From the IMG/VR virus record IMGVR_UViG_3300017963_000188, positions 62,001 to 126,000 of that record: a stretch of DNA of 64,000 nucleotides; one strand, written 5' to 3'. This document shows, in pieces, positions 2,296-62,147 of this stretch. A program made the translations under genes and the position numbers. Numbering within the stretch: the first letter of the stretch is position 1; each line of letters opens with the position of its first letter. A model generated the notes under the pieces. That model was not told the origin of the DNA. It saw only the letters and a list, made by a program, of their open reading frames with translations, and did not search any database.

Positions 2296-2324
2296 TTAGT
2301 GAACTTTAATTCTGAGGTGGAATC

Positions 2325-3200
2325 ATGCCTAGTCCTGAAATAGCAGAACAAAATAAAGAAATAGCAGAACTTTCAAAACTCACTGGTATCAAACATAATA
2401 CAGGTACTGGTCAGGGAAATGAAGTTCTCTATGTTGATTTTGAAAAACCAGAAAGGATCGGATTCATTGAATTTGGTTTTGATCTCAAAACAGGAGCTTT
2501 TGGTGGTGCCGTGATCTACTACTCAGAAGACAAAGCCTTAGTGATTGAAGACATGCCAGAAGGTGCTTCAACTAAAGAAAAGGCTAGGTGGATTAAGGAT
2601 AAAGTCAACGAATGGACTAGTCAATATTTCGAAGGTTTAAAGTCTTCTTCACAGCTCAGGAAACTGGCTAGAAGCATTATTGGATATCGTATCAAAGACC
2701 TCCCTGACAATGCTTTTGAAGGTCATTACATTGGTTACAAGGGTGAAGATTTCATCAATTTTGATGACACATACCAGTTAGGTCTTGGTCATCCAGCTTT
2801 TGGTGGAGAGCATGAAGAGGATTGGACTGTCAGTGAAGAACTTGAAGAGATTGGAGCTGACACCACTAAACTAAATGCTATCTGGGAAAAACATCTCGGT
2901 AAACTCCATGATGCTTTTATTAAAGATTCTCTATACGATGGGACTACATATCAGGTTGTTCCAAATTTTGATGTATCAGGTTTTGACTATGCTTCACAGG
3001 ATGGTGGGTATTGGGTAGCAAACATTTCTGTTGATTTTGATGCAAAACCAAATCTTGAATCTACTGACATTGACCAAATCACACATCATCTAGATGATGT
3101 GGGATCAAGACTTGTGAGCAGAATGAAAGATTTGGCTACGGAACTTAATAGAGAATTTGACAGGCTTGGTGTGGAATTCAGATCTGAGGTTTGGTCTTAA
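2325..3200 (+). CDS. two-domain hypothetical protein with internal SSQLRKLARSI motif
   Basis: 291-aa ORF, GAGG SD. Confidence 0.8.
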   Translation: MPSPEIAEQNKEIAELSKLTGIKHNTGTGQGNEVLYVDFEKPERIGFIEFGFDLKTGAFGGAVIYYSEDKALVIEDMPEGASTKEKARWIKDKVNEWTSQYFEGLKSSSQLRKLARSIIGYRIKDLPDNAFEGHYIGYKGEDFINFDDTYQLGLGHPAFGGEHEEDWTVSEELEEIGADTTKLNAIWEKHLGKLHDAFIKDSLYDGTTYQVVPNFDVSGFDYASQDGGYWVANISVDFDAKPNLESTDIDQITHHLDDVGSRLVSRMKDLATELNREFDRLGVEFRSEVWS

Positions 3201-3607
3201 TGTATCGTTACGCTGATGAACATGACGATTTCGAGAAGATTTGGGGAGATTGGGATCGTGAACTAAAATCAAGAGGTTTTAGTCTAGCTAAACCCTGGAG
3301 TGGCGAGTGGGAGGTCGAAGGTAGACCTTGGGTGAAGGAACGTGGGAACATCCAGATTTGGGTCTATGTTGTGCCTCAGTGGGATCAGCAAGAAGTCATG
3401 GGTCGTGTGAAGAAACATCATTCAATCTATGGTCACATACAACTAAGACGAGTTCTAGATAGATTTGAACTCAAACCTAGATCACTTAGCAGTCTTCGTA
3501 ATATGAAAAGTAAGGGTCTTGAAAAGGTAGATTACTATCTAGAACAAATGGAAACAGGACTCCCCGATCTTAAAAAGTCCTCTCAGTCTTTTTCTTGGTA
3601 TTTCTGA
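3200..3607 (+). CDS. hypothetical protein with MYRY N-terminus
   Basis: TAATG coupling to upstream gene gives start 3200. Confidence 0.75.
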   Translation: MYRYADEHDDFEKIWGDWDRELKSRGFSLAKPWSGEWEVEGRPWVKERGNIQIWVYVVPQWDQQEVMGRVKKHHSIYGHIQLRRVLDRFELKPRSLSSLRNMKSKGLEKVDYYLEQMETGLPDLKKSSQSFSWYF

Positions 3608-12231: not shown

Positions 12232-12954
12232 TCATATAGTGACTATTAATTGATCATTGAAACCTTGGTTCTCATCCATCTTGACATATCCAAACGGATT
12301 ACAAATAACCCTGGTTTCATCTATCATGTAATCCTTTGAATCGTGCATATGACCATGAATCCAAATTTTTGGTTTTTGTTTCATAATCATCTTCTCTACA
12401 TCACATACAAAAAATGGATTCAATGTGGATGCTTTATATTCATCTCCCACACTTTGATAACTAGGGGCATGATGAGTGATCACTACATCTCCTGGTCTCA
12501 TATTGTTACGTAGAAATTCAAGACCTTTGCTATTTTTACGATACACATGTTTCCTGAAATCTTTAATTTGATTGAAATCATTAAGGTTATGTTCATACCC
12601 CACGGCTCGATAATCAAATGGAAACCACATGGTAGTGCCAAGAAATCTCTGACCTCCACACACCACCAGACCAGGGTTGAGCACCTTGAATTTATCAGTG
12701 GAACATGATTCTAATATAGCATCAACAACTTCAAATGATGTGGTGTAATACTCATGGTTACCTGGTACATACAAGATGTCCACAGGATATTTATCACATA
12801 ACAGTTCTATGACCTTGACCAAACGACCTCCCACAGAGAGATCCCCAGCAATGATCAGCAAGTCAACTCCTTCAGGATTCAGTGAATCAATGAAAGACCG
12901 TCCTTGATCCTGATGGAATTCAAGATGTAGATCTGACAAAATTTGTATATTCAT
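12232..12954 (-). CDS. calcineurin-like metallophosphoesterase
   Basis: SDLH, AGD, GNHE, THH, GHMH motifs. Confidence 0.92.
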   Translation of the reverse strand: MNIQILSDLHLEFHQDQGRSFIDSLNPEGVDLLIIAGDLSVGGRLVKVIELLCDKYPVDILYVPGNHEYYTTSFEVVDAILESCSTDKFKVLNPGLVVCGGQRFLGTTMWFPFDYRAVGYEHNLNDFNQIKDFRKHVYRKNSKGLEFLRNNMRPGDVVITHHAPSYQSVGDEYKASTLNPFFVCDVEKMIMKQKPKIWIHGHMHDSKDYMIDETRVICNPFGYVKMDENQGFNDQLIVTI

Positions 12955-13018: not shown

Positions 13019-13585
13019 TTATTTGATCAAAGACCAAAATTCTTCTGGGTCTTTAAGGGATTTAGATTCTAGAATCATCACTGATTTTAGTAGATTAACA
13101 GCTTTCTTTTTACCATCCCATTTAAGTGTGATGAGATTAGTATCTGTGAATTCATAATCTATCGGGTCATCTACATCTAGATTTATAGTGTCTAGGGCAT
13201 CATCAAACCGTAGTTCTAGATCAGTCAGTAACTTCTCCAACTGTTTTCGTGGTACTCCCCAGACAGGATCAGAACCCCAATTTTGTTCTGTAGAAGAAGC
13301 CGATTCAAGCTCTTCCATTGCAGTGTTGAGGTCATCTTTCTTGAGAGCCTTGATTGCAGCATCACCATATTTGGATGCTGATTTAGCATCTTCCTGAACT
13401 CTTCTTGAATACAGCTCAGCTTCTTCTTGCACTTCTTGTGGCATCTCTTCAGTGGCACTTCCTGACCCCTCAAGAAAATATGTCTCTCCATCATGGTCTT
13501 GAAAAGCATTAGCCCAATCCCAATCGGTCCAATCATTTTGTGCTTTTTCTATAGCTGAAATTATTCTATCTACTTCTGGTAGCAT
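13019..13585 (-). CDS. hypothetical protein with EVDRIISAIEKAQ leader
   Basis: 188 aa, AAGGAG SD. Confidence 0.75.
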   Translation of the reverse strand: MLPEVDRIISAIEKAQNDWTDWDWANAFQDHDGETYFLEGSGSATEEMPQEVQEEAELYSRRVQEDAKSASKYGDAAIKALKKDDLNTAMEELESASSTEQNWGSDPVWGVPRKQLEKLLTDLELRFDDALDTINLDVDDPIDYEFTDTNLITLKWDGKKKAVNLLKSVMILESKSLKDPEEFWSLIK

Positions 13586-13612
13586 GGCTCACTCCTTTAT
13601 AGATAATACCAA

Positions 13613-13628
13613 TATAAATAGATTTATA
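13613..13628. promoter_or_regulatory. palindromic class B site between divergent genes
   Basis: TATAAAT-AG-ATTTATA; analogous site at 35610..35626. Confidence 0.5.
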
Positions 13629-13669
13629 ATCCTTCTTTATGATTCAATATATAGAACTGGAGGTACAAT

Positions 13670-14680
13670 ATGGGTAATGAAAAATACCAGGATGGAAGCA
13701 GCATCTGTGTTGTGGCAAAAGTACCTGAACATATCGCTTGTCAATTCCCAAAAGATGCTGATGAAGATGCTGATGATCCACATATCACAGTGCTTTATAT
13801 TGGTGATATGCCTAGAGAGAAGACAGGCACATTAATCAATACCTGCAAAAACATTTTTGGTCAGATACCATTTTTACGAGCAAGGTTAGATTCGAAGGTC
13901 TCATACTTTGACCCCTCAGATAGCTCAGAGGGTCGTAGAGTAGCTAAACTAGATGTTAAATGCCCTGACCTTCATTATTTCCACAAGCGTCTCTGGGACG
14001 AATTAGAAGGTGCTGGTGTGGATGTAGCTCATTCATTCCCTGAATACCATCCTCATGTCACTTTGGATTACATAGAACCAGACACTGAATATGAAGGTCC
14101 AGTACCTAATGGTGAATGGGATATTGATGGTATTGAGATTTGGGGGTGGGAAGATCATATCAGAATCCCGTTTATCAGCATTGAAATCATAGCTGATAAT
14201 GTTGTAGCTAGGGTCTTAGCAAACCGTGTAGTTTCTAGAGTTATGCAAGCACAATGGTCACGTCTAAAAAATCACTTCAATGTCAGAAACCCTCTGTTCC
14301 ATGCCACTACTGGACCCCGTGCTATGAAAGTCATTGAAGAAGGATTCAAATCAGATAGTGGATATTCTGATTACGGGATGGGAAATGTTTTGGGAGTCTC
14401 TTTCTCAAGAAGCCTCGAATATCTATTAGGAGGTCACTTCGGGAATGCTATCTTTGTGGTAGATAAAGATGAACTTGGGAGCAAGTTCAAAGTAGATCAT
14501 GTAGAGTCTTATCCAGAAGAACGAGAAGAGAGGGTAGTCACCAAACACCTTCCACCCAAATACATCAAGGGATTAATCTTCAATGGTAAGCTATTGAAAG
14601 GAGACTTCCCATACTTTTCATCACTACCTTTTCCAGTTGTGCATCGACCAAAAAGTGACTGGGTATTGATTGGAGAATGA
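13670..14680 (+). CDS. 2H phosphoesterase (Acb1-like) fused to ADP-ribosyltransferase-like domain
   Basis: HITV and HVTL motifs; C-terminal LFHAT...GVSFSRS...EREERV. Confidence 0.75.
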   Translation: MGNEKYQDGSSICVVAKVPEHIACQFPKDADEDADDPHITVLYIGDMPREKTGTLINTCKNIFGQIPFLRARLDSKVSYFDPSDSSEGRRVAKLDVKCPDLHYFHKRLWDELEGAGVDVAHSFPEYHPHVTLDYIEPDTEYEGPVPNGEWDIDGIEIWGWEDHIRIPFISIEIIADNVVARVLANRVVSRVMQAQWSRLKNHFNVRNPLFHATTGPRAMKVIEEGFKSDSGYSDYGMGNVLGVSFSRSLEYLLGGHFGNAIFVVDKDELGSKFKVDHVESYPEEREERVVTKHLPPKYIKGLIFNGKLLKGDFPYFSSLPFPVVHRPKSDWVLIGE

Positions 14681-15164
14681 CATGAAATATGTATTACACA
14701 TCTGGGGTACTATCATTTGGTTACCAATTTCACTTCTCTTCTATCTGTTCTATATTGGCCCCTGCCTTATATTCAAGCAACTATATTGGGATGGCTGGGC
14801 AGATTTCTTAATACCCAAGTTTGTGGTTAAAGAAGATACAGCAGCAGCCTGGTTTCTTTCTCTATGGGGTGGTTGGTGGGGTCATGCATTACCAACATTT
14901 ATTGTGACAAGACATGATACAGATGATGAAAGACAGAAAAAAACTTTAGTCCATGAATGCCGTCATGTTTGGCAACTCTTTGTATTCTGGATCTTCCAAC
15001 CAATTATCTATGCTTGCCATACCCTATACCTATACATCTTCACAAAACGACATGCTTACTACGATAATTGGTTTGAACGGGATGCTCGTAGAGCTGCGGG
15101 TCAACTTGTAGACATCCCCCCTGAGATGTGGCGTGATCCTAACGATAGGTGGCCTTGGTGGTAG
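14670..15164 (+). CDS. membrane protein with HExxH motif
   Basis: hydrophobic segments; LVHECRHVWQ...YYDNWFERDA. Confidence 0.7.
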   Translation: MENDMKYVLHIWGTIIWLPISLLFYLFYIGPCLIFKQLYWDGWADFLIPKFVVKEDTAAAWFLSLWGGWWGHALPTFIVTRHDTDDERQKKTLVHECRHVWQLFVFWIFQPIIYACHTLYLYIFTKRHAYYDNWFERDARRAAGQLVDIPPEMWRDPNDRWPWW

Positions 15165-15461: not shown

Positions 15462-15701
15462 TTATTTCCCTTGAAATATAGGTTTTGAATCTGTAAATTC
15501 TTGGTCATAGAGAGCTAGTTCAGGTACATAATCTTTTCGTTCTCTAGTTAAATCTGCTACTCGATGGAACCTATCGATATGGAATTTGAGATGCTCTTTG
15601 CACAACGTAAATCCAAAAGCTGAATTGAAGGTTCCTAGCTTGCCACATTTAATCTTTGTTCCATTCTCCTTATAACCAATCGTTTGGTCACATCTTGTCA
15701 T
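15462..15701 (-). CDS. hypothetical protein
   Basis: 79 aa, overlaps phosphatase stop. Confidence 0.55.
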   Translation of the reverse strand: MTRCDQTIGYKENGTKIKCGKLGTFNSAFGFTLCKEHLKFHIDRFHRVADLTRERKDYVPELALYDQEFTDSKPIFQGK

Positions 15702-16209
15702 CCTCAGATCCTTTAGCTATATCTTCGTAACCCCAATAGTTACTGACCTCTCTTAAAGATCTGAGTACAAAAGAGTTAGGGCGTATCTGTGGGTTGTCCC
15801 TTTTAAACCTTGAATAGTCTAGGTTTAATATATCGTTTATGAATGTGGCAACCGCTCCAGACCTAGCAATTCCAGCCATACAATGAACAACTAGCACTTC
15901 TCTAGAATCTCGTTTTTGTAGAGTATTGACAAACTCAATAATTTGTTTTGCCTGTTCTTTATTGAATAAAAAATCCTTAGATATAGAGCTGTCTTTTGAA
16001 ATTTCTTCAGGAGTGAGATCTCCAAATTGAAGTTGCAAAATATCTTTGCAACCGAGCATTGTTTTGAGACGTAGCTTTTCACTATTGGTGAGAGATTCTT
16101 CTATAGTGGTGGTGATGGAAATGAGATTCCAAGAATAGAAAGGTTCAATGCTCTTCGAAATCCAATGATAGATTTCTTGAATCGGGTATACTTTGATTTT
16201 CTGAATCAT
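15688..16209 (-). CDS. protein tyrosine/dual-specificity phosphatase-like protein
   Basis: VVHCMAGIARS (CX5R). Confidence 0.85.
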   Translation of the reverse strand: MIQKIKVYPIQEIYHWISKSIEPFYSWNLISITTTIEESLTNSEKLRLKTMLGCKDILQLQFGDLTPEEISKDSSISKDFLFNKEQAKQIIEFVNTLQKRDSREVLVVHCMAGIARSGAVATFINDILNLDYSRFKRDNPQIRPNSFVLRSLREVSNYWGYEDIAKGSEDDKM

Positions 16210-17140: not shown

Positions 17141-17270
17141 CTTCCTCAGACATAGCTACAGTTTTGCCTGTTTTCAAATTTACATAATGAGAACCTATTA
17201 CGGACCATCCATCATCATCTATTTTATATTCTCCTTCAAGCATCTTGTTCTTTCCGATGTTGAAACACAA
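17052..17270 (-). CDS. small hypothetical protein
   Basis: 72-aa ORF between cca and methyltransferase; start uncertain. Confidence 0.4.
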   Translation of the reverse strand: MCFNIGKNKMLEGEYKIDDDGWSVIGSHYVNLKTGKTVAMSEEDEETDGDSQARQDLLPDDTCNSRREGGEL

Positions 17271-18594
17271 TCTGCATCAGAGCTTCCATGTTGTTGTCTT
17301 CTGGCACATCCAGGACATGCTCCATCAAAGCATTCAACACTACACCCACTTGAGGACCAGGCTTGACACCCAGAGCCTGCATCACATCATGCCCATCCAC
17401 AGCCAAGTTACGTGGACTATTGGGGGTGAAGTCTTTTTGCTCATCACATCGTTTCTTGAAGGTCACGAAATCTTCGTGGTCCTTCTCAGACATCCCAGCA
17501 GAACGACTCCCAGCTTTGTCTGCAAAGCTCAAGATGAAAAAGTCTTTCAGACGTTCTTTCCCAATCTTGTTGATAAACCTTCTCACACCAGGATCTTTCA
17601 TCCTCCTGTTGCTTTGATCTGCCATATGGTGAAACACCAAATGCTTTACGAATTCTCGTTCTTCATTGGAGAACTTCATTCGACGCATGAAGTCTTCAGT
17701 GATACGAGCTGATTCTTTTTGATGATCTATGAATGCAAATTCACCTCGACGTTCGTCAAATTCCCTGACCACAGGCTTTCCAATATCATGTAGGAAAGCA
17801 GCCAGACGGATCAAGGGCCTATCAGCAGGGACATTCTTGATCACTGCTACGGTATGTCCCCACACATCAAAGTCATGGTAATGGTTCTGCTTGCAATCAA
17901 ACATAGCCTCTGCTTCTGGGCAGAAGTGTTCAAACAGACCACAGATTCTCAACTGTCTTAGGCCAGTTTCCACATGTTCTGAAGACAGAATCTTCATGAA
18001 CTCATCCCTGATTCGTTCTGGTGATACCTTAGTCAAGACCTTTGAACAGTCCTTCATTGCTTGCAAAGTAAATGGTTCGATCTGAAATCCTAACCGAGAT
18101 GCAAATCTGATTGCTCTCATCACTCTCAGACCGTCTTCCAAAAACCGATCCTTAGCTTTCCCTACTGCTTGGATCAACCCTGCCTTCAGGTCTTTCTCTC
18201 CACCAAAAGGATCTACCAAGACATCATCAATAGGATCAAAAGCCATTGCATTGATAGTGAAGTCACGACGGCTCAGGTCCTCATTAATGTCACTGATAAA
18301 ATCCACAGAATCAGGACGACGACCATCACTGTAGTTTCCATCACCCCTTAGGGTAGTGGCTTCAAAACCCTCACCATCAATCATGACTGTAACGGTACCA
18401 TACTCGATTCCCGTGGGTACAACTTTGGGGAACATGGCTACTACTTGATCTGGAAGAGCAGAAGTACAGATGTCCCAGTCTTTTGGATCTAGACCTAGAA
18501 TTGCATCTCGAACAGACCCACCTACGATGTGGGCAGAGAAGCCTTTTTCCTTCAGGCTCTTGATGATTTCTACAACTGGCTCTGGAACTCTCAT
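17236..18594 (-). CDS. cca: CCA tRNA nucleotidyltransferase with HD domain
   Basis: VGGSVRD, DWD, DLSRRDFTINAMA, EDGLRVMRAIRF, FLHDIGK. Confidence 0.93.
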   Translation of the reverse strand: MRVPEPVVEIIKSLKEKGFSAHIVGGSVRDAILGLDPKDWDICTSALPDQVVAMFPKVVPTGIEYGTVTVMIDGEGFEATTLRGDGNYSDGRRPDSVDFISDINEDLSRRDFTINAMAFDPIDDVLVDPFGGEKDLKAGLIQAVGKAKDRFLEDGLRVMRAIRFASRLGFQIEPFTLQAMKDCSKVLTKVSPERIRDEFMKILSSEHVETGLRQLRICGLFEHFCPEAEAMFDCKQNHYHDFDVWGHTVAVIKNVPADRPLIRLAAFLHDIGKPVVREFDERRGEFAFIDHQKESARITEDFMRRMKFSNEEREFVKHLVFHHMADQSNRRMKDPGVRRFINKIGKERLKDFFILSFADKAGSRSAGMSEKDHEDFVTFKKRCDEQKDFTPNSPRNLAVDGHDVMQALGVKPGPQVGVVLNALMEHVLDVPEDNNMEALMQIVFQHRKEQDA

Positions 18595-19507: not shown

Positions 19508-20212
19508 TCATTTCACTCTAAGATTCTTCAAATCATTGTACCGCTTCATTATGTTTTCAGCATAATTGTTGGCTGTGACTGGATCTTTCTTTTTGATGAT
19601 GTCCCAATCAACCATACCAGGACCTCTATTATAGACAGCTAAAGCAAGTTCAAGGTCAGGATAAAGGTCTTGATAGGCTTTAAGTATTTGGATTCCATAT
19701 CTGATACTCACGTCAGGATCAAACAATGAACCTTTGATATTCCAAATCTTAGCCCAATGGTCCATAATCTGCATAAGTCCCTTAGCTCCCACTTTTGACT
19801 CAGCTTTTGGATCAAACCCTGATTCTACAGATATCATGGCTAGGATAAGATCAGAATCCATTCTATATTCTTTACTGTACCGATACACCTTGACAGCTAT
19901 ATCACGAGCCAGTTCACGATTCACCTCAGGTTTTAGATAAATAATTTTGAGAAAGATAACATTTTCATGGTGACTGGACATTATTGTGGTACGGAGTTTT
20001 ACCAGCTCTTCGTCTACAGATTTGGATTTATGGTCAAGAACTTTATTCTGTTCTGAAATGGTTTCTAATTCAAACCGAGATGTTATCATCTCCATAATAT
20101 TGAAACCACATACTGCTATATTTAGGATGCAAATGGCGATAGTTAAATAATGCATCTTTGTTGGTTTCTGTGGTGGTGGTGCAGGAGGTAATGGTGTTTG
20201 TATATCAGTCAC
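19508..20212 (-). CDS. membrane-anchored lytic transglycosylase (SLT)
   Basis: N-terminal TM; AMISVESGFD, GAKGLMQI, AVYNRG. Confidence 0.9.
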   Translation of the reverse strand: MTDIQTPLPPAPPPQKPTKMHYLTIAICILNIAVCGFNIMEMITSRFELETISEQNKVLDHKSKSVDEELVKLRTTIMSSHHENVIFLKIIYLKPEVNRELARDIAVKVYRYSKEYRMDSDLILAMISVESGFDPKAESKVGAKGLMQIMDHWAKIWNIKGSLFDPDVSIRYGIQILKAYQDLYPDLELALAVYNRGPGMVDWDIIKKKDPVTANNYAENIMKRYNDLKNLRVK

Positions 20213-20224
20213 GGTTAAAACCTT

Positions 20225-21127
20225 TCACTTCCAGATTCTGTTCCAAATAAATTTCAACCTTTGACCAATTCTTTTGAGCAATGATGCTCTTTTCAGGAAT
20301 GGTAAATCACCATATATCTGAAATCCTGCTGCCCCTTTGTGACCTCCACCATCATAACGTATTGCTATGGCACTCACATCAACATCTTCCTTGGTGCTAT
20401 ACAACGAGACTTTCCAGAAACCTTTTTTTGACCAATGGAAAACAATCATCAAATCATAGATTTCAGGGTCCCATTTAGAGTCAAAAATTTTTGAACTGGC
20501 AAAGCCCTTATTGAGAGCTATAGCTTTCTTACCATCAATTTCGGTTTCAAAGCTGTACCCTCTGCAATATTTTGTCTCTTGTACCTTTTCATACTCAATA
20601 ATGAATTCCCCATCCTTCAAGGTTTTGTTAAGGAATTCTTTGTCATCACTAAGCATCTTTTCCCAGATATCAGATTGAGGGAATGTGTTAGGATAGATTC
20701 TCATACCATATTGAAACACCAAAGTATCAGGATCTTCATGATCCCATACATCATATCGTCCCAATAGATACACAGCTCTTGGCATCTCAACGTCAGGATA
20801 GATATACTCCCAAGTCAACTCACACCCAGCAGTACCATTTCTACTATTACCTTCAGCAGAGAAATCATTTTTCTCAGCATTATCTAGAGCCGATTTATGA
20901 TGATCAATCCAGATCAGGTTACAAGATTCTTTGAGACGAATCATATCACTGAACGGTTGCAGAGAGAAATCTACCATGTAAACGGTATCATCCTTTCCAA
21001 TCTCATCCCATGGGAATGGGTCTCCATAATTAATCCCATGTAGTTTGCAATCTGGGTGTTTCCGATGCACGATTGCGCCAGAGCAATGACCATCAAGGTC
21101 TACGGAATGAAAGAAACAGTGAATCAT
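20225..21127 (-). CDS. DHH/DHHA1 phosphoesterase
   Basis: DLDG, MVDF, WIDHH, GGGHKGAAG. Confidence 0.9.
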   Translation of the reverse strand: MIHCFFHSVDLDGHCSGAIVHRKHPDCKLHGINYGDPFPWDEIGKDDTVYMVDFSLQPFSDMIRLKESCNLIWIDHHKSALDNAEKNDFSAEGNSRNGTAGCELTWEYIYPDVEMPRAVYLLGRYDVWDHEDPDTLVFQYGMRIYPNTFPQSDIWEKMLSDDKEFLNKTLKDGEFIIEYEKVQETKYCRGYSFETEIDGKKAIALNKGFASSKIFDSKWDPEIYDLMIVFHWSKKGFWKVSLYSTKEDVDVSAIAIRYDGGGHKGAAGFQIYGDLPFLKRASLLKRIGQRLKFIWNRIWK

Positions 21128-21722: not shown

Positions 21723-21971
21723 CTACTCCTCATATTCAATTATTGGGAATTGTTTACCTGATATGGTTTCTTCTCTCCCACATTCTTCACATCTATGGGG
21801 GTATTTTATTGGGTAGGTAGGGTAATACGTGTCCATTGGTACCATCTCTCCACCACAGTCACAAAACAGTTTAGTCTCGAAAACTTTAACTTCTCTTTTG
21901 ACTTTTTTCATGGCTCCATCCGAATGACAAGATTTGAGGTAATACTCATCAATATTTCTATCATACCTCAT
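21723..21971 (-). CDS. zinc-ribbon hypothetical protein
   Basis: CDCGGEM...YPHRCEECG. Confidence 0.65.
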   Translation of the reverse strand: MRYDRNIDEYYLKSCHSDGAMKKVKREVKVFETKLFCDCGGEMVPMDTYYPTYPIKYPHRCEECGREETISGKQFPIIEYEE

Positions 21972-23049
21972 CCCACTTAATGGCCTGAATCACTACGTCA
22001 GGATAAAGTTCTCGACTCATGATTTCAATGCACATCTCATTGATTCGTTTTCTATTTGGCTCACGAGGCAATGAGGTTGTCTTCTTCAACTCCAAGAATA
22101 GACGTTCTTTTTCAAGAGCCCATTCTTCTAGCTGTTCAAATGACCAGGCCCCTTGACCAATAGTCATGAGTTCTTTTGCGTCAGGACGACGTACAATGAC
22201 CCCTTTACCAGTAAGGATTTCTTCACCCATCCTGATGAGCCTTACTAGATTTGTAGCGTGTTTACAATCATATCCAAACTTAGCTTCTAGTTCAGCTCGT
22301 TTTGGGTTCCTATTTTTCTTCCAGTTCTGGTAGCTATTCCACTCATTAATAGCATTCTGATATTGACGTTCCCTGGACATGGCCTCAATGAAGTTGTCAG
22401 AACAACCTGTTAGCTTCTGAATCTCAGCCCAGTTTTGTTCGTCCCCAGGATCAAAACTCTGCAAAAGACCAACTGTATTTACTTCTCGAAGTTCCTCCAG
22501 AGTCTCATCACTGAGTCTAGCTTCCTCAATAGATCCTTTCAGAATGTGGTTCAGCACATAGAAGAAAGCTCCCATATGGTCACGGCTCACAAGCTTGTGA
22601 GTCTCAGGAAGACCATAGGTTCCACGTTCTGGCTTTGTCTTTGGTGGGTTCAAAAGCCAGTTTCGGTGCCTTCTGATACGTTTAAGCTGTGAGAAGGCAT
22701 AGCCCAAATAGCTGCTACCCATCTTTGAGGAAAGGAACAAATCCCTGTGGTCTCTGATCAGCTTTCCTGTGTCTGTCATGGTCACGACATCAGAGTCTTC
22801 ACAGTACAGAATCTCAAAGCTAGAGGGGTTAGCTGCAAGAGCCATGTTACAGAATTTCTTCAGATCCCACAACACTCGGTCAGGTTCCTTGATTTCTTTC
22901 TGCTCAAATCTCTGGAGACATCCAAGATAATATTGAATTGGAGCCAGAGCAATACCCCTGAAATCCTCATCAGAGTCTGGTCTGCTGGTCCCATAAGCAT
23001 GGGACCCAAACCATGTTTCGTATATAATTTTCAAGTCTTTTAGATCCAT
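21961..23049 (-). CDS. Pol-beta superfamily nucleotidyltransferase (RlaP/YcgL-like)
   Basis: GSHAYGTSRPDSDEDFRG, YDCKHATNLVRL. Confidence 0.88.
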   Translation of the reverse strand: MDLKDLKIIYETWFGSHAYGTSRPDSDEDFRGIALAPIQYYLGCLQRFEQKEIKEPDRVLWDLKKFCNMALAANPSSFEILYCEDSDVVTMTDTGKLIRDHRDLFLSSKMGSSYLGYAFSQLKRIRRHRNWLLNPPKTKPERGTYGLPETHKLVSRDHMGAFFYVLNHILKGSIEEARLSDETLEELREVNTVGLLQSFDPGDEQNWAEIQKLTGCSDNFIEAMSRERQYQNAINEWNSYQNWKKNRNPKRAELEAKFGYDCKHATNLVRLIRMGEEILTGKGVIVRRPDAKELMTIGQGAWSFEQLEEWALEKERLFLELKKTTSLPREPNRKRINEMCIEIMSRELYPDVVIQAIKWDEV

Positions 23050-23142: not shown

Positions 23143-23628
23143 ATGGCTGAAAATGCACGAGACGAAATCCAAAGATACATTGGAGACCTAGAGGACAGAA
23201 CCTCAAACATCAAGAAATTGATTGATAAGTTCACAGAACATCAATCTGATATAGAACATTATTCTAGCAGTGTTGATGAATTGATCTCAGGTGAATTCTC
23301 CTCTTCTCTAGAAGTACCTCCTGTGGTTGACAAGCAACTTCAAGATCTCATCAATGAACATGGAGATCTTCTCTTGGCTATTGATACAGAATCAGATTCT
23401 GAGCATTCAGAAATGACCTGGGGTGTTTTGGATGCTGTCAATGATTATCTCTCACATTATGACGACATCGAAGCTGACCTAGAGACTCTCAATGCTGGGC
23501 TGAAAGAAGTGGTATCCAACATAGAAGACGTATTACATGCTTGGAACAGGAAAGATGTTCAGAAACTAGACAAGCTAAGTGACCAACTTACTGATGCAAT
23601 CACTGGTTTGAAAAGACTCCTTAAGTAA
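23143..23628 (+). CDS. acidic helical-bundle hypothetical protein
   Basis: 161 aa, AAGGAG SD, against local strand. Confidence 0.75.
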   Translation: MAENARDEIQRYIGDLEDRTSNIKKLIDKFTEHQSDIEHYSSSVDELISGEFSSSLEVPPVVDKQLQDLINEHGDLLLAIDTESDSEHSEMTWGVLDAVNDYLSHYDDIEADLETLNAGLKEVVSNIEDVLHAWNRKDVQKLDKLSDQLTDAITGLKRLLK

Positions 23629-24213
23629 CTCTATACAATCTTCAAAAACCTTTTCTTTACTTTGTTCTCCATTTACAAATTTGACATTTGGGAGACGTTT
23701 ATAGAGTAGATTGTATTCTTGGGCTATTTTATCCAGGAAGTCATTGTTTTCAAACCTATCAGCATATTGACCAGTCTCAGCCCACCTCTTTTCCAATCTA
23801 TTAAGAGCTGTATTTGTAGCTATCTTAATGACGATAGTGAGGTCAGGGGTTTTTGCTTTTTGATTGACACTCTGAGTGAAATCCATGCCGCATGTGATAC
23901 TCTGATAGACTAGGGAAGAACCTAACCCACGATCTCCTATTACCCATTTCCCAGACCTCAGCCAACCATTAACTTCTCGATCATGCACTAAACGGTCTGC
24001 TGCAAATAATAAAGCATGTACCTCTTCTATTGGATCTGATTCCTTCAGATATTTGCGAGCTATCTTTCCTATCTCACCGTCTGTTGGTTCTTTAGTAGAT
24101 ACAATATCAATATCATGGTTGTTAAAAGAACTCTCAATTAATTCACATTGAGTAGTAGAACCACATCCATCAATACCTTCTAGAACTACATATTTTGGTT
24201 CATCAATAACCAT
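23575..24213 (-). CDS. tmk: thymidylate kinase
   Basis: LEGIDGCGSTT, KEPT, LLFAADR, DRG..S.LVYQ, PDL. Confidence 0.92.
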   Translation of the reverse strand: MVIDEPKYVVLEGIDGCGSTTQCELIESSFNNHDIDIVSTKEPTDGEIGKIARKYLKESDPIEEVHALLFAADRLVHDREVNGWLRSGKWVIGDRGLGSSLVYQSITCGMDFTQSVNQKAKTPDLTIVIKIATNTALNRLEKRWAETGQYADRFENNDFLDKIAQEYNLLYKRLPNVKFVNGEQSKEKVFEDCIELLKESFQTSDCISKLVT

Positions 24214-37815: not shown

Positions 37816-38538
37816 CTAAAATAGTTCCAGTTGCACTGGTATTCTAGGTTCCTTTCCTTTGATATATAATCTCTTATATCGACCAGAAGGAACCATCACA
37901 ATGTTGTCGATCACAATACCCTCTTGGATATATTTTGACAAACATAGACGTGCCGTACTGGTCGTTCTATAATGATGCTTGATATTATCTATAGCCTCTT
38001 TGAGATGGCAGCCTGGATGTAGGCTTACAAATCTAACAAGGTCTGAAACAGTTAATTGGAAGGGAGTAAAATACTTGTTCTGGTCATTACCTGCTTCTGC
38101 CCATGTCTTATGTTCTTCTCGTAAATTTTTCTTGAGCAACCAATGGACCTTTCTACGAAACTTTGGTTCCATAGATTCTATAACTTGATTATTTTTTCTA
38201 ACGTTTATTTCTATAAGTCCAATTCCAAAATGTTTACATAACGATGCTTCAAAGTCTCTTCGACCTGAGCTGTAAGACCTCCATTGGCCTTTTTTCTTTG
38301 GGACTGCTATTGAAACTCTATGGGCATATCTTGTCCAGAACATGGCTTGCTCAAGCACTTTGAGACTGAAACTGGTCTTCACCTCAATGACCCATAATAC
38401 AGGGTTCATCTTGGCTACAATGTCAGCTCTTGAACTGGTTCTGCTAGGATCAATCTCTACTTCTTGGTAAACTTCCCAATGGTGGTCCTGAAGCCAGTCC
38501 ACAACTGACTTTGCAATGTCAGATTCTTTTATTTTCAT
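37816..38538 (-). CDS. PD-(D/E)xK nuclease-like (MmcB-like) protein
   Basis: VYQEV...RADIVA...VIEVKTS. Confidence 0.7.
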   Translation of the reverse strand: MKIKESDIAKSVVDWLQDHHWEVYQEVEIDPSRTSSRADIVAKMNPVLWVIEVKTSFSLKVLEQAMFWTRYAHRVSIAVPKKKGQWRSYSSGRRDFEASLCKHFGIGLIEINVRKNNQVIESMEPKFRRKVHWLLKKNLREEHKTWAEAGNDQNKYFTPFQLTVSDLVRFVSLHPGCHLKEAIDNIKHHYRTTSTARLCLSKYIQEGIVIDNIVMVPSGRYKRLYIKGKEPRIPVQLELF

Positions 38539-39551
38539 TACTTGAGTTTGTTAGGAACGATCTGGGAATGCATCCAATGAGTAGAGGTTTGCACATGACC
38601 TTTTCTTACATATTTGGCAGTTGATTTTCTGAAATCCCGGTATCGAAATTCATCAACCACTCTGATTACATATCCTTCACATTCATCGTTGTCATAAGTT
38701 TCCTGGTACAAATTCTTAATGGTCTCTTCATCCCATATCCCTCTATAAAGAACCGGTACTGTTTCAAGACCTAAGAGTTGACACCATTCTACTGTGTCAT
38801 CCCAGGATAGGCAACGATTATTTTCATCCCAGATCGAGAATGTCATGAAATAACTGGGAAGATTCTCGTAGCTTATGGAATGAGCTGCATATAAATTCTC
38901 TCCACAAATTCTCCAATCTCTGGGGATCTCATAAGCCACTGAAGCATGGAGTGACTTCACCCAATGCCTCGATTCATGGTCCTTCGAGGTGATAGAACGA
39001 GCATGGATGTGACCTTGGTACATGGTAGTATTCTCACCATCCATCTTAATGGTCACTACAACTTCTTTACCTTCAAATTGGGAAGTATCCTGAAGGATCT
39101 TATCATCATCAGAAGCTCCAGGACTCCATGGTAAATGATAGGTCCTTGGATATTTATAGAACCCTATGAACGTGATCAGAGGATTTGCAGATCGAATCAT
39201 TTTCTCAGATTCAGAATATAATTCACCATGAAACCTGACCTTATGAGTCTTATCAGTACAGGGATTACCCCACTTGTCATACTCACCTTTTTTAAGATGA
39301 GGGGGTAGTAAGATAGTCTCGATACCAGCAGCTTCCCTAACCTCATTGGTGCTGACCGAAGTATCCTCAGCTTTGATGTGACAATCAGAACAAAGGGCAG
39401 CACCATTATCTAGATAGTATCCACCATCATCCCAAAGTTTACGTTCCATGATGTGGTGAGCATCTGAGGCAGGAGCCTGACAGATCACGCACTTGTGACC
39501 ATCTCGGTCCATTACGTTCTGTCTGAACTGGTCTCTAGTAAGCAGCATCAC
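38538..39551 (-). CDS. HNH domain fused to RNA ligase family domain
   Basis: RDGHKCVIC..DAHH..LCSDCH; KYPRTYHL, KMDGEN, GENL, EGYVIR, AKYVR. Confidence 0.85.
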   Translation of the reverse strand: MMLLTRDQFRQNVMDRDGHKCVICQAPASDAHHIMERKLWDDGGYYLDNGAALCSDCHIKAEDTSVSTNEVREAAGIETILLPPHLKKGEYDKWGNPCTDKTHKVRFHGELYSESEKMIRSANPLITFIGFYKYPRTYHLPWSPGASDDDKILQDTSQFEGKEVVVTIKMDGENTTMYQGHIHARSITSKDHESRHWVKSLHASVAYEIPRDWRICGENLYAAHSISYENLPSYFMTFSIWDENNRCLSWDDTVEWCQLLGLETVPVLYRGIWDEETIKNLYQETYDNDECEGYVIRVVDEFRYRDFRKSTAKYVRKGHVQTSTHWMHSQIVPNKLK

Positions 39552-53482: not shown

Positions 53483-53569
53483 TGGCAGAGGGGAGGGGAC
53501 TCGAACCCCTAAGGCTTTTACACCCACCCGATTAGCAGTCGGGCCTCTTACCAATTAGAGTACCCCTCT
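53483..53569 (-). tRNA. trnS: tRNA-Ser(GCU)
   Basis: loop CTGCTAA, A1:U72, CCA. Confidence 0.95.
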
Positions 53570-53580
53570 GTAAAAATTAT

Positions 53581-53671
53581 TGGCAGAGGGGGTGGGATTC
53601 GAACCCACGGGGGCTTTGACACCCCACCGGTTTTCAAGACCGGCACCATAGACCAGCTCGGACACCCCTCT
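53581..53671 (-). tRNA. trnS: tRNA-Ser(UGA)
   Basis: loop CTTGAAA, A1:U72, CCA. Confidence 0.95.
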
Positions 53672-53691
53672 GTATTTAACAACCTCCTTAT

Positions 53692-53766
53692 TGGCAGGGG
53701 TGCTGGGATTCGAACCCAGAGTCCAGGTTTTGGAGACCTGTGGTTTAGCCATTAACCGACACCCCT
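53692..53766 (-). tRNA. trnW: tRNA-Trp(CCA)
   Basis: loop CTCCAAA, CCA end. Confidence 0.95.
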
Positions 53767-53772
53767 GTATTT

Positions 53773-53848
53773 TGGTGGGTCCAGAGGGATTTGAACCCCC
53801 GACCTTCTGATTAAGAATCAGCAGCTCTACCAACTGAGCTATGGACCC
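53773..53848 (-). tRNA. trnK: tRNA-Lys(CUU)
   Basis: loop TTCTTAA, CCA. Confidence 0.93.
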
Positions 53849-53860
53849 TTCATTGCTCCT

Positions 53861-53937
53861 TGGTGGGATGGGAGGGACTTGAACCCCCGACGCTTGGAAC
53901 TTCAACCCAACGCTCTACCAATCTGAGCTACCATCCC
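53861..53937 (-). tRNA. trnF: tRNA-Phe(GAA)
   Basis: loop TTGAAGT, CCA. Confidence 0.93.
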
Positions 53938-53942
53938 ACAAA

Positions 53943-54029
53943 TGGTGGGCCGGGGAGGATTTGAACCTCCGTAGCCTTGCAGCGGCAGATTTACAGTCTG
54001 CTCCCTTTGACCAACTCGGGCACCGACCC
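53943..54029 (-). tRNA. trnY: tRNA-Tyr(GUA)
   Basis: loop CTGTAAA, long variable arm, CCA. Confidence 0.95.
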
Positions 54030-54037
54030 ATAATTTT

Positions 54038-54114
54038 TGGCGAGCCAGGTGGGACTCGAACCCACAACACTCGGATTAAAAGTCCGATACGCTACCAAAT
54101 TGCGTCACTGGCTC
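54038..54114 (-). tRNA. trnK: tRNA-Lys(UUU)
   Basis: loop CTTTTAA, G73, CCA. Confidence 0.95.
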
Positions 54115-54146
54115 ACTATTTAATGCCTCCTATCGAGACTTATCAT

Positions 54147-54221
54147 TGGCGGGAACGGAGGGATTCGAACCCCCAACCTAGCGGTTAACAGCCGCTAGCT
54201 CTACCATTGAGCTACGTTCCC
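54147..54221 (-). tRNA. trnN: tRNA-Asn(GUU)
   Basis: loop CTGTTAA, CCA. Confidence 0.95.
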
Positions 54222-54228
54222 AGTTATT

Positions 54229-54316
54229 TGGTGGGCAGGGAAGGATTCGAACCTCCGTACCCCCGAAGGGGATCGGGTCTACAGCCCGACGCCATTAACC
54301 ACTCGGCCACCTGCCC
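54229..54316 (-). tRNA. trnY: tRNA-Tyr(GUA), second copy
   Basis: loop CTGTAGA, long variable arm, CCA. Confidence 0.93.
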
Positions 54317-61853: not shown

Positions 61854-62147
61854 TTATTGGTTAAACTGATCTGGGAGTTCTTCTTCACTTTGAGTGAAAC
61901 CTCTATTTTCTGGGACGTGTTCCCAGTAAAAAGCGTCTTCTTTCAAACCACCATCTGTACGCATAGGTTCTGAAATGCCAGGCTTGATTCTTGGATGATA
62001 TGTTTTCATTTCACTACGATCCGTATCAATAGCAACCAAGACATTTCCTTCTACAACTCTGGTATCAATTTTTAGAATCCCATTTTGATCGAAATGAAAA
62101 TCAGGATCTTCTCTTAAAAGCACACCATCAAAAAAAAGTAACTTCAT
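61854..62147 (-). CDS. hypothetical protein
   Basis: 97 aa, ATGA-coupled. Confidence 0.55.
   Translation of the reverse strand: MKLLFFDGVLLREDPDFHFDQNGILKIDTRVVEGNVLVAIDTDRSEMKTYHPRIKPGISEPMRTDGGLKEDAFYWEHVPENRGFTQSEEELPDQFNQ

Follow-up and report, generated by a model that had tools for sequence, protein, structure and literature searches.

Phage ADP-ribosyltransferase (ART) domains and 2H phosphoesterase domains are already known as weapons in phage-host conflict. Both are among the components of polyvalent proteins, phage polypeptides that combine two or more biochemically disparate domains and are predicted to be packaged and injected (Iyer et al. 2017, PMC5512222). The phage 2H enzyme Acb1 has nucleobase-stacking residues Y12, W74, F107 and W147, together with E141 and a C-terminal substrate lid at residues 145-152 (PMC9117128). 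Among ARTs, an HX[S/T] motif in strand 1 marks the H-type enzymes, while [STS] in strand 2 with [EXE] in strand 5 marks the cholera-toxin family, EXE being typical of arginine-modifying enzymes; the signature of Tpt1 is H-H-h (PMC8120803), and its essential tetrad lies in part on its N-lobe (PMC6097658). Here we describe P0001, a gene from an uncultured giant phage (IMG/VR record IMGVR_UViG_3300017963_000188, positions 62,001 to 126,000; this stretch of 64,000 nucleotides is referred to below as the window). The contig (Ga0180437_10000024) is 358,038 bp long, and an identical protein is already on record from it. The product of P0001 is one polypeptide joining a catalytically equipped 2H phosphoesterase to an ART-fold domain.

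An earlier note on this DNA had proposed such a fusion from a handful of short motifs. Direct reading of the DNA finds every one of these motifs at the position that had been quoted for it, and the fusion itself is borne out by Pfam, structure models and Foldseek. The motifs are not chance occurrences, because the 2H half passes Pfam gathering scores and the C-terminal motifs are invariant columns of a protein family that fall on predicted strands. The two halves were modelled separately with AlphaFold. A full-length alignment for folding (A4) was dropped because MAFFT had paired the F-H-A-T of the ART domain with the second of the two H-x-T halves in 2H homologs; this overlay of the two halves is an alignment artefact of the common H-x-T tripeptide and not homology. 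In a single-sequence search of PDB sequences, full-length P0001 found no match.

Judging from its profile scores and predicted structure, the N-terminal domain is a genuine 2H phosphoesterase of the LigT/ThpR-like kind, catalytically equipped, with its two H-x-T motifs on a duplicated beta-alpha-beta lobe fold. P0001 scores 33.2 bits with PF13563 (cutoff 27) and 24.4 bits with PF02834 (cutoff 23.3), the Pfam 2H-superfamily match spans residues 33-158, and PHROGs assigns the protein to phrog_755, annotated as 'RNA ligase'. A profile of 31 homologs has only five invariant positions, H38, T40, L101, H129 and T131. When this profile is compared with the PDB, LigT/ThpR-type enzymes come out best (5h7e at 2.1e-15, 2fyh at 5e-14 and 1vdx at 9e-14), and Acb1 chains appear further down (9q2g at 5.7e-8 and 7t26 at 2.2e-5). 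The AlphaFold model of residues 1-200 (predicted local distance difference test, pLDDT, 91.8) gives the same ordering in Foldseek, where drCPDase (5h7e) is first with E 1e-7 and template modelling (TM) scores of 0.63/0.68; next come 1iuh, E. coli LigT and the rotavirus VP3 2'-5' phosphodiesterase. The top matches are all 2H enzymes, and Acb1 structures occupy ranks 16-31 with TM scores of 0.38-0.44.

The earlier note had called this domain Acb1-like. That label is too specific, since P0001 reaches only 20.3 bits as a whole protein and 22.3 bits as the domain alone against the Pfam Acb1 family (PF23474, cutoff 27) and LigT/ThpR enzymes are ahead both by profile and by fold. Some Pfam Acb1 match is seen in 29 of the 31 members of the 2H subfamily (best 1e-11). 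In the model, a long linker helix follows the last 2H strand at the place where Acb1 has its free C-terminal lid. As a separate observation, ten 2H relatives of about 290-317 amino acids (P0119-P0125, P0129, P0132, P0133, P0141) have in common a different C-terminal extension, in which about 100 conserved amino acids come after a Gly-rich stretch. This is one more recurrent '2H + module' architecture; the sole Pfam domains on record for these ten proteins are 2H families.

The C-terminal half of P0001 belongs to a family defined here by HMMER searches with residues 190-336 against 1.84 billion representatives. At E <= 1e-3 the family comprises 98 clusters (at 50% identity), 52 of them at E <= 1e-10, and its members range from stand-alone proteins of 130-175 amino acids to a module within proteins of up to 1752 amino acids. 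In an alignment of 47 sequences the invariant columns are, in P0001 numbering, P208, H211, T213, S244, G258, E286 and R288. Conservation across 72 full-length members is complete for H211 and nearly so for D265 (70/72), T213 and E286 (69/72 each), S244 (68/72), Ser or Thr at 246 (67/72), E284 (67/72) and R288 (66/72), with R247 kept in 58. The AlphaFold model built from the family alignment (pLDDT 89.8, predicted TM score 0.86) places H211 in strand 1 (E19-24), S244 in strand 2 (E54-57) and E286 at the opening of strand 5 (E97-101).

Foldseek searches of the PDB with this model return, among annotated matches at E <= 0.1, exclusively members of the ART superfamily. The top match is Tpt1/KptA (8tg3, E 2.7e-4, 23% identity; 19-24% over the Tpt1/KptA structures), and DarT1, PltA, SCO5461, scabin, pertussis S1, cholera toxin A, CC0527, the mono-ADP-ribosyltransferase domain of SdeA and PARPs follow lower down. 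In a viral structure library the neighbours are uncharacterised jumbo-phage proteins, phage Tpt1, PARP-like and DarT-like proteins, and fusions annotated as 'head morphogenesis' or 'minor capsid' (MuF); in the ESM Atlas they are PARP, Tox-ART-HYD1, Arr, ExoA, Tpt1 and scabin. On the strength of this predicted structure, the C-terminal domain has the split beta-sheet fold of ARTs, in a family that no Pfam model covers. Pfam finds only noise in this half of P0001 (Toprim_2, E 0.17) and weak PARP matches in 4 of the 47 family members (best E 0.021), and the PTS_2-RNA (PF01885, searched at E <= 1), ART-PolyVal and R-S-E models match none of the 47. Against PDB sequences, the family profile yields a spurious dehydrogenase match alone (E 0.076) and no Tpt1 chain at E <= 10.

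As far as the alignment can tell, the family joins the H-type and cholera-toxin-type patterns in a single H-S-E signature with E-x-E. The near-invariance of these H, S-x-S and E-x-E elements argues for an active enzyme. The earlier note was right to call this domain an ART, and alignment and model agree with the strand-1, strand-2 and catalytic-Glu elements it had picked out. The Alt-like kind of ART that it implied does not hold, because strand 1 carries His where Alt has Arg and the R-S-E families of Pfam give no match.

Three assignments of the module to known ART families were tried and rejected. It is not a Tpt1/KptA enzyme, being without the winged-helix N-lobe, the RH-R-R tetrad and any PF01885 match and having H-S-E in place of H-H-h. 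Nor is it ART-PolyVal, a family with the signature H-Y-D; hhalign against the ART-PolyVal region of P0037 gives a probability of 0.4%. An Alt-like ART is excluded by the strand-1 His, found in 72/72 members where Arg would be expected, and by the missing R-S-E Pfam match.

The two domains are held together by a predicted helix. Residues 171-199 are predicted as a single long helix that continues into the first helix of the C-terminal module, and the conserved part of that module starts about 20 residues ahead of the invariant His. Because the helix merges in this way into the conserved start of the ART-like module, the true linker is limited to residues 168-192, approximately. The earlier note had described this region as a 'motif II' or leader-type linker. 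A linker does exist, but its leader or repeat nature was not reproduced, as the segment does not recur in the window: blastp of the linker against all window ORFs gave nothing significant (best non-self E 7.9), a two-sequence linker profile against the six-frame translation of the window gave a best non-self E of 0.47, and blastn-short of the linker DNA against the window gave no match longer than 14 nucleotides.

A sister phage provides a natural experiment on this architecture. Its 12.9-kb locus (L001) is syntenic with the window, carrying in turn a metallophosphoesterase gene, a small open reading frame (ORF), a 2H-fusion gene (P0002) and a 160-amino-acid membrane-type HExxH ORF. DNA homology between the window and this locus runs from 13199 to 14160 (70.6%), is interrupted, and resumes from 14669 to 15164 (80.3%), as judged by blastn. 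At the protein level P0001 and P0002 are 69% identical by BLASTP up to residue 192, the end of the linker, behind which P0002 has an unrelated C-terminus of about 150 amino acids with an HExxH motif and weak zincin-type matches (Peptidase_M78/M56). More broadly, the C-terminal extensions seen among relatives of the P0001 2H domain are of at least five unrelated kinds. The C-terminal position is an exchangeable effector slot whose junction lies at the C-terminal end of the linker, and this exchangeability argues that the two modules are not mutually dependent. The zincin-like C-terminus of P0002 was also considered as a relative of the HExxH ORF downstream of the fusion gene; the comparison (E 0.43) indicates that they are unrelated.

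The ART-like module is promiscuous in its partners. Among the 98 family representatives, only P0001 fuses it to a 2H domain. Elsewhere it is joined to MuF (P0051, and P0037, which additionally has ART-PolyVal), to topoisomerase IB (TopoIB; P0014, P0033, L007 and L010), to GNAT (P0009, P0029 and P0046, the last also with SprT), to HNH (P0032) and to NUDIX (L015/L016). Source annotations label these carriers 'hypothetical', and the MuF part is labelled 'SPP1 gp7 family head morphogenesis protein'. A search with a 14-sequence module alignment found only 2 viral and 9 metagenome loci. In a 314-kb phage contig (L018), a giant TopoIB + module protein is encoded 5 kb from a capsid gene. P0001 itself fits the polyvalent definition of disparate domains, with 2H and ART-like parts in one ORF, and the partner repertoire of the module, as read from sequence, matches that of injected polyvalent proteins.

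Other recurrent associations of the module were seen. A SWIM zinc finger is fused to it in P0005 and P0018 and encoded directly upstream in the case of P0010. A PAP2 phosphatase is fused to it in P0016 and L010, in the latter alongside TopoIB, and is a neighbour in L003. Intein-containing giant genes with LAGLIDADG and intein-splicing domains adjoin module genes on two large phage contigs (L017:9075-13829 and L018:2616-5681).

We favour, with middling confidence, a reading of P0001 as a small two-enzyme phage effector of the polyvalent type, with independent activities held together by a rigid helix. In this model the LigT/ThpR-type 2H module would open 2',3'-cyclic phosphate ends or cleave 2'-5' or 3'-5' (oligo)nucleotide linkages by metal-independent His-Thr acid-base catalysis. 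The second module would be an NAD+-dependent mono-ADP-ribosyltransferase in which His211 and Thr213 may hold the NAD+ ribose and the Ser244-x-Ser246 strand may give the nicotinamide pocket its shape. Activation of ribosyl transfer to a host macromolecule would fall to Glu286, in the E-x-E motif. The E-x-E motif points to arginine on a protein as the possible acceptor. P0001 would most likely act early in infection, in host takeover or counter-defence, and may be delivered with the virion.

Several observations weigh against this model. In structure, the ART module comes closest to Tpt1/KptA enzymes, whose acceptors are RNA phosphates and not proteins; fusions to the phosphoesterases NUDIX and PAP2 could point instead to a nucleotide or phosphate acceptor; and E-x-E alone is no proof of arginine specificity. 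P0001 itself bears neither a MuF or portal domain nor a packaging signal that could be recognised, features of virion delivery being present solely in relatives of the module (P0037, P0051 and L018), and its neighbours are nucleotide-metabolism and RNA-repair-type genes rather than structural ones. A bolder reading, which we consider unlikely, makes the module the founding member of a new ART clade, its hybrid active site combining a diphtheria/Tpt1-type His-x-Thr with cholera-toxin-type STS-like and E-x-E elements. It would then ADP-ribosylate nucleic acids, on terminal phosphates or on bases, and not proteins. If so, the recurrent fusion or adjacency to 2H, NUDIX, PAP2, TopoIB and CCA/poly(A)-polymerase-type nucleotidyltransferases would mark a previously unrecognised NAD+-dependent system by which large phages process or cap the ends of nucleic acids without KptA.

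We favour the independent two-module effector over coupled NAD+-dependent RNA-end healing, which is still a serious rival even though we rate it as rather improbable. Under RNA healing, a host anticodon nuclease would leave a 2',3'-cyclic phosphate that the 2H domain opens to a 2'-phosphate, the ART module would perform a KptA-like step, and the phage RNA ligase, RlaP and CCA-adding enzyme would finish tRNA repair. A pathway of KptA with a 2H enzyme is established and has been reported in jumbo phages (PMC9503650), which counts in its favour, as does the closeness of the 2H domain to RNA 2',3'-cyclic phosphodiesterases. Tpt1/KptA structures head the Foldseek list for this ART domain (E 2.7e-4, 19-24% identity), yet the module is without the winged-helix N-lobe in which three of the four essential Tpt1 residues reside (Arg16, His17 and Arg64; PMC6097658), no family member matches Pfam PTS_2-RNA, a PDB search with the family profile yields no Tpt1 chain, and the H-S-E signature differs from the H-H-h of Tpt1, to which an invariant E-x-E is foreign. 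The gene setting can likewise be read both ways. Besides 28 tRNA genes, the window encodes an Rnl2-type RNA ligase, an RlaP nucleotidyltransferase and a CCA-adding enzyme. In L020, an RlaP homolog has a stand-alone 2H of the P0001 2H subfamily less than 5 kb away; L017 encodes, upstream of an ART-like gene, both a 2H protein and a phosphatase of PNKP type (near-threshold match); and NUDIX is fused to the ART-like module in L015/L016. Nevertheless, in seven other loci neither a 2H nor an RNA ligase gene is found within 10 kb of the module, the 2H + module fusion is unique, most carriers are MuF, TopoIB or GNAT giants, and the zincin-like module that takes the place of the ART in the sister-phage ortholog indicates that the 2H does not depend on the ART.

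The idea implied by the earlier note, that an Acb1-type 2H destroys the cyclic oligonucleotides of CBASS (cyclic-oligonucleotide-based anti-phage signalling system) while an Alt-like ART is packaged in the capsid and injected alongside it, appears distinctly unlikely. Pfam Acb1 matches in 29 of 31 members of the 2H subfamily (best 1e-11) and significant, lower-ranked matches to Acb1 structures speak for a relationship, and 2H domains of polyvalent proteins have been proposed to degrade defence nucleotides (Iyer et al., PMC5512222); P0001 itself, however, falls under the Acb1 gathering score, LigT/ThpR enzymes outrank Acb1 by sequence profile and by structure, and the linker helix occupies the position of the Acb1 C-terminal lid (145-152; PMC9117128). 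MuF fusions occur among relatives of the ART module, as would suit a packaged protein, but neither a packaging domain in P0001 nor a repeated leader in P0001 or the window was found, and the strand-1 His is not the Arg of the Alt/VIP2 clade, with no R-S-E Pfam match. It is very unlikely, in our view, that the C-terminal module is not a transferase at all and serves as an NAD+ glycohydrolase or as an NAD+/ADP-ribose-binding regulatory domain controlling the attached enzyme. ART-fold domains are able to act as NADases (PMC9503650), a NUDIX fusion would fit a free ADP-ribose product, and the module is joined to many unrelated enzymes, as a regulatory domain might be. Against this, a near-invariant E-x-E with the conserved Arg, in a complete catalytic-type signature, exceeds the needs of mere binding, and the many stand-alone members of 150-170 amino acids have nothing to regulate in cis.

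The positions of these features and of neighbouring genes are collected in Table 1. The HExxH ORF starts 1 nucleotide past the stop of the fusion gene and is probably co-transcribed with it. It is 90% identical to its homolog in L001, above the 69% of the 2H domain itself. In L020 the stand-alone 2H is also followed by an ORF, which is not the same HExxH gene. L020 is an unrelated 64-kb contig and encodes an RlaP homolog (2323-3423, 41% identical) 4.6 kb from the 2H, which suggests a loose 2H-RlaP linkage. The 2H protein of L017, which together with the near-threshold PNKP-type phosphatase is encoded upstream of the ART-like gene, has 578 amino acids. Genes for nucleotidyltransferases with a PolyA_pol head (CCA-adding type) were seen some 2.5-4 kb from module genes in L010 (5102-6817), L013 (870-3410) and the window (17236-18594). 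No close relative is known among deposited phages: megablast of 20 kb of window DNA against phage records gave no match, and the best protein-level relatives of a 731-amino-acid neighbour protein are about 27% identical. A promoter and terminator scan gave background-level signals only and was uninformative.

Table 1. Coordinates of P0001, its domains and motifs, and neighbouring features in the window (position 1 is the first nucleotide of the window).
Feature	Position	Strand	Basis or remark
Fusion gene P0001 (2H-linker-ART-like)	13670..14680	+	one intact ORF, 336 amino acids, ATG start, no internal stop
2H phosphoesterase domain, LigT/ThpR-like, residues ~10-168	13697..14173	+	Pfam, AlphaFold2 model, Foldseek
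First catalytic H-x-T motif, H38-I-T40	13781..13789	+	invariant in 31 homologs; H38-I-T-V codons from nucleotide 13781
Second catalytic H-x-T motif, H129-V-T131	14054..14062	+	invariant in 31 homologs; H129-V-T-L codons from nucleotide 14054
Helical linker, residues ~168-192	14180..14245 (residues ~171-192)	+	common only to P0001 and syntenic homolog P0002
Swapped C-terminal cassette, no DNA homology to L001	14161..14668	+	blastn, window against L001
ART-fold module, residues ~193-334	14246..14671	+	family search, AlphaFold2 model, Foldseek; without Pfam match
Strand-1 H211-A-T213, HX[S/T] NAD-ribose contact motif of H-type ARTs	14300..14308	+	family conservation, model; extended motif F-H211-A-T213 at 14297-14308
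Strand-2 S244-F-S246-R247, STS-like motif	14399..14410	+	family conservation, model; extended motif G-V-S244-F-S246-R247-S at 14393-14413
E284-R-E286-E-R288, E-x-E at strand 5 start and conserved Arg	14519..14533	+	family conservation, model; extended motif E284-R-E286-E-R288-V at 14519-14536
Hydrophobic HExxH (H-E-C-R-H) protein, 160 amino acids	14682..15164	+	weak DUF6782 putative metallopeptidase match; conserved beside 2H-fusion gene
Calcineurin-type metallophosphoesterase	12232-12954	-	kept in L001
Cys-phosphatase-like protein (dual-specificity/PTP-like, HCxxGxxRS motif)	15688-16209	-	
CCA-adding/poly(A)-polymerase enzyme with HD domain	17236-18594	-	
SLT transglycosylase	19508-20212	-	
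DHH/DHHA1-like protein	20225-21127	-	
RlaP (PF10127) 'RNA repair pathway' / 'RNA ligase-associated' nucleotidyltransferase	21961-23049	-	
Thymidylate kinase	23575-24213	-	
HNH (N-terminal) + Rnl2-type RNA ligase	38538-39551	-	PF09414 5.5e-36; phrog_24030 2.5e-124
28 tRNA genes	30241-63801	-	
Array of six tRNA-Leu with different anticodons	33515-34056	-	
Block of nine tRNAs	53483-54316	-	

New here is an ART family of about 98 clusters for which Pfam offers no model, sequence searches detect no solved relative and the sources searched give no functional name. Its signature mixes two classical ART clades, and its fusion to a LigT-type 2H is unique; those sources annotate neither the signature nor the architecture nor the cassette swap. 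The exchange of the ART for a zincin-like cassette behind the same helical linker shows how an effector slot evolves. Once identified, the acceptor of the ART would give a function to the module in many giant virion-associated phage proteins and could reveal a new host-takeover or anti-defence reaction.

Set beside known systems, residues 10-168 of P0001 resemble LigT/ThpR-type enzymes (drCPDase 5h7e and E. coli LigT 5ldm) in fold, size and the two H-x-T motifs, at 16-19% identity; P0001 differs in being phage-encoded and in adding a helical linker and, at the C-terminus, a putative second enzyme. With phage Acb1 (7t26/7t27 and 9q2g/9q2y) it has in common the 2H fold, the HxT/HxT tetrad, a core of about 150 residues and a phage origin, whereas its score stays below the Pfam Acb1 cutoff and a linker helix stands where Acb1 has its lid. 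The closest solved structures to the module are those of the NAD-binding Tpt1/KptA C-lobe (E ~3e-4), which also has HX[S/T] in strand 1. Tpt1 is two-lobed, with a winged-helix N-lobe and an Arg-His...Arg...Arg tetrad, whereas the module has one lobe only, some 145 amino acids long, behind a 2H domain and a helix. Cholera-toxin-type R-S-E ARTs, including T4 Alt, ModA and ModB, are like the module in the STS-like strand 2 and the E-x-E at strand 5, and their use by phages in host takeover parallels the role proposed here; the module differs in its strand-1 His in place of Arg, and its structural matches to cholera toxin, pertussis toxin and scabin are weak (E 4e-3 to 6e-2). Compared with ART-PolyVal (PF18760) and the polyvalent proteins, P0001 has an ART of a different family and two domains only, with neither MuF nor portal, yet its module likewise occurs in multi-enzyme giants with MuF, TopoIB and GNAT and stands directly beside ART-PolyVal in P0037.

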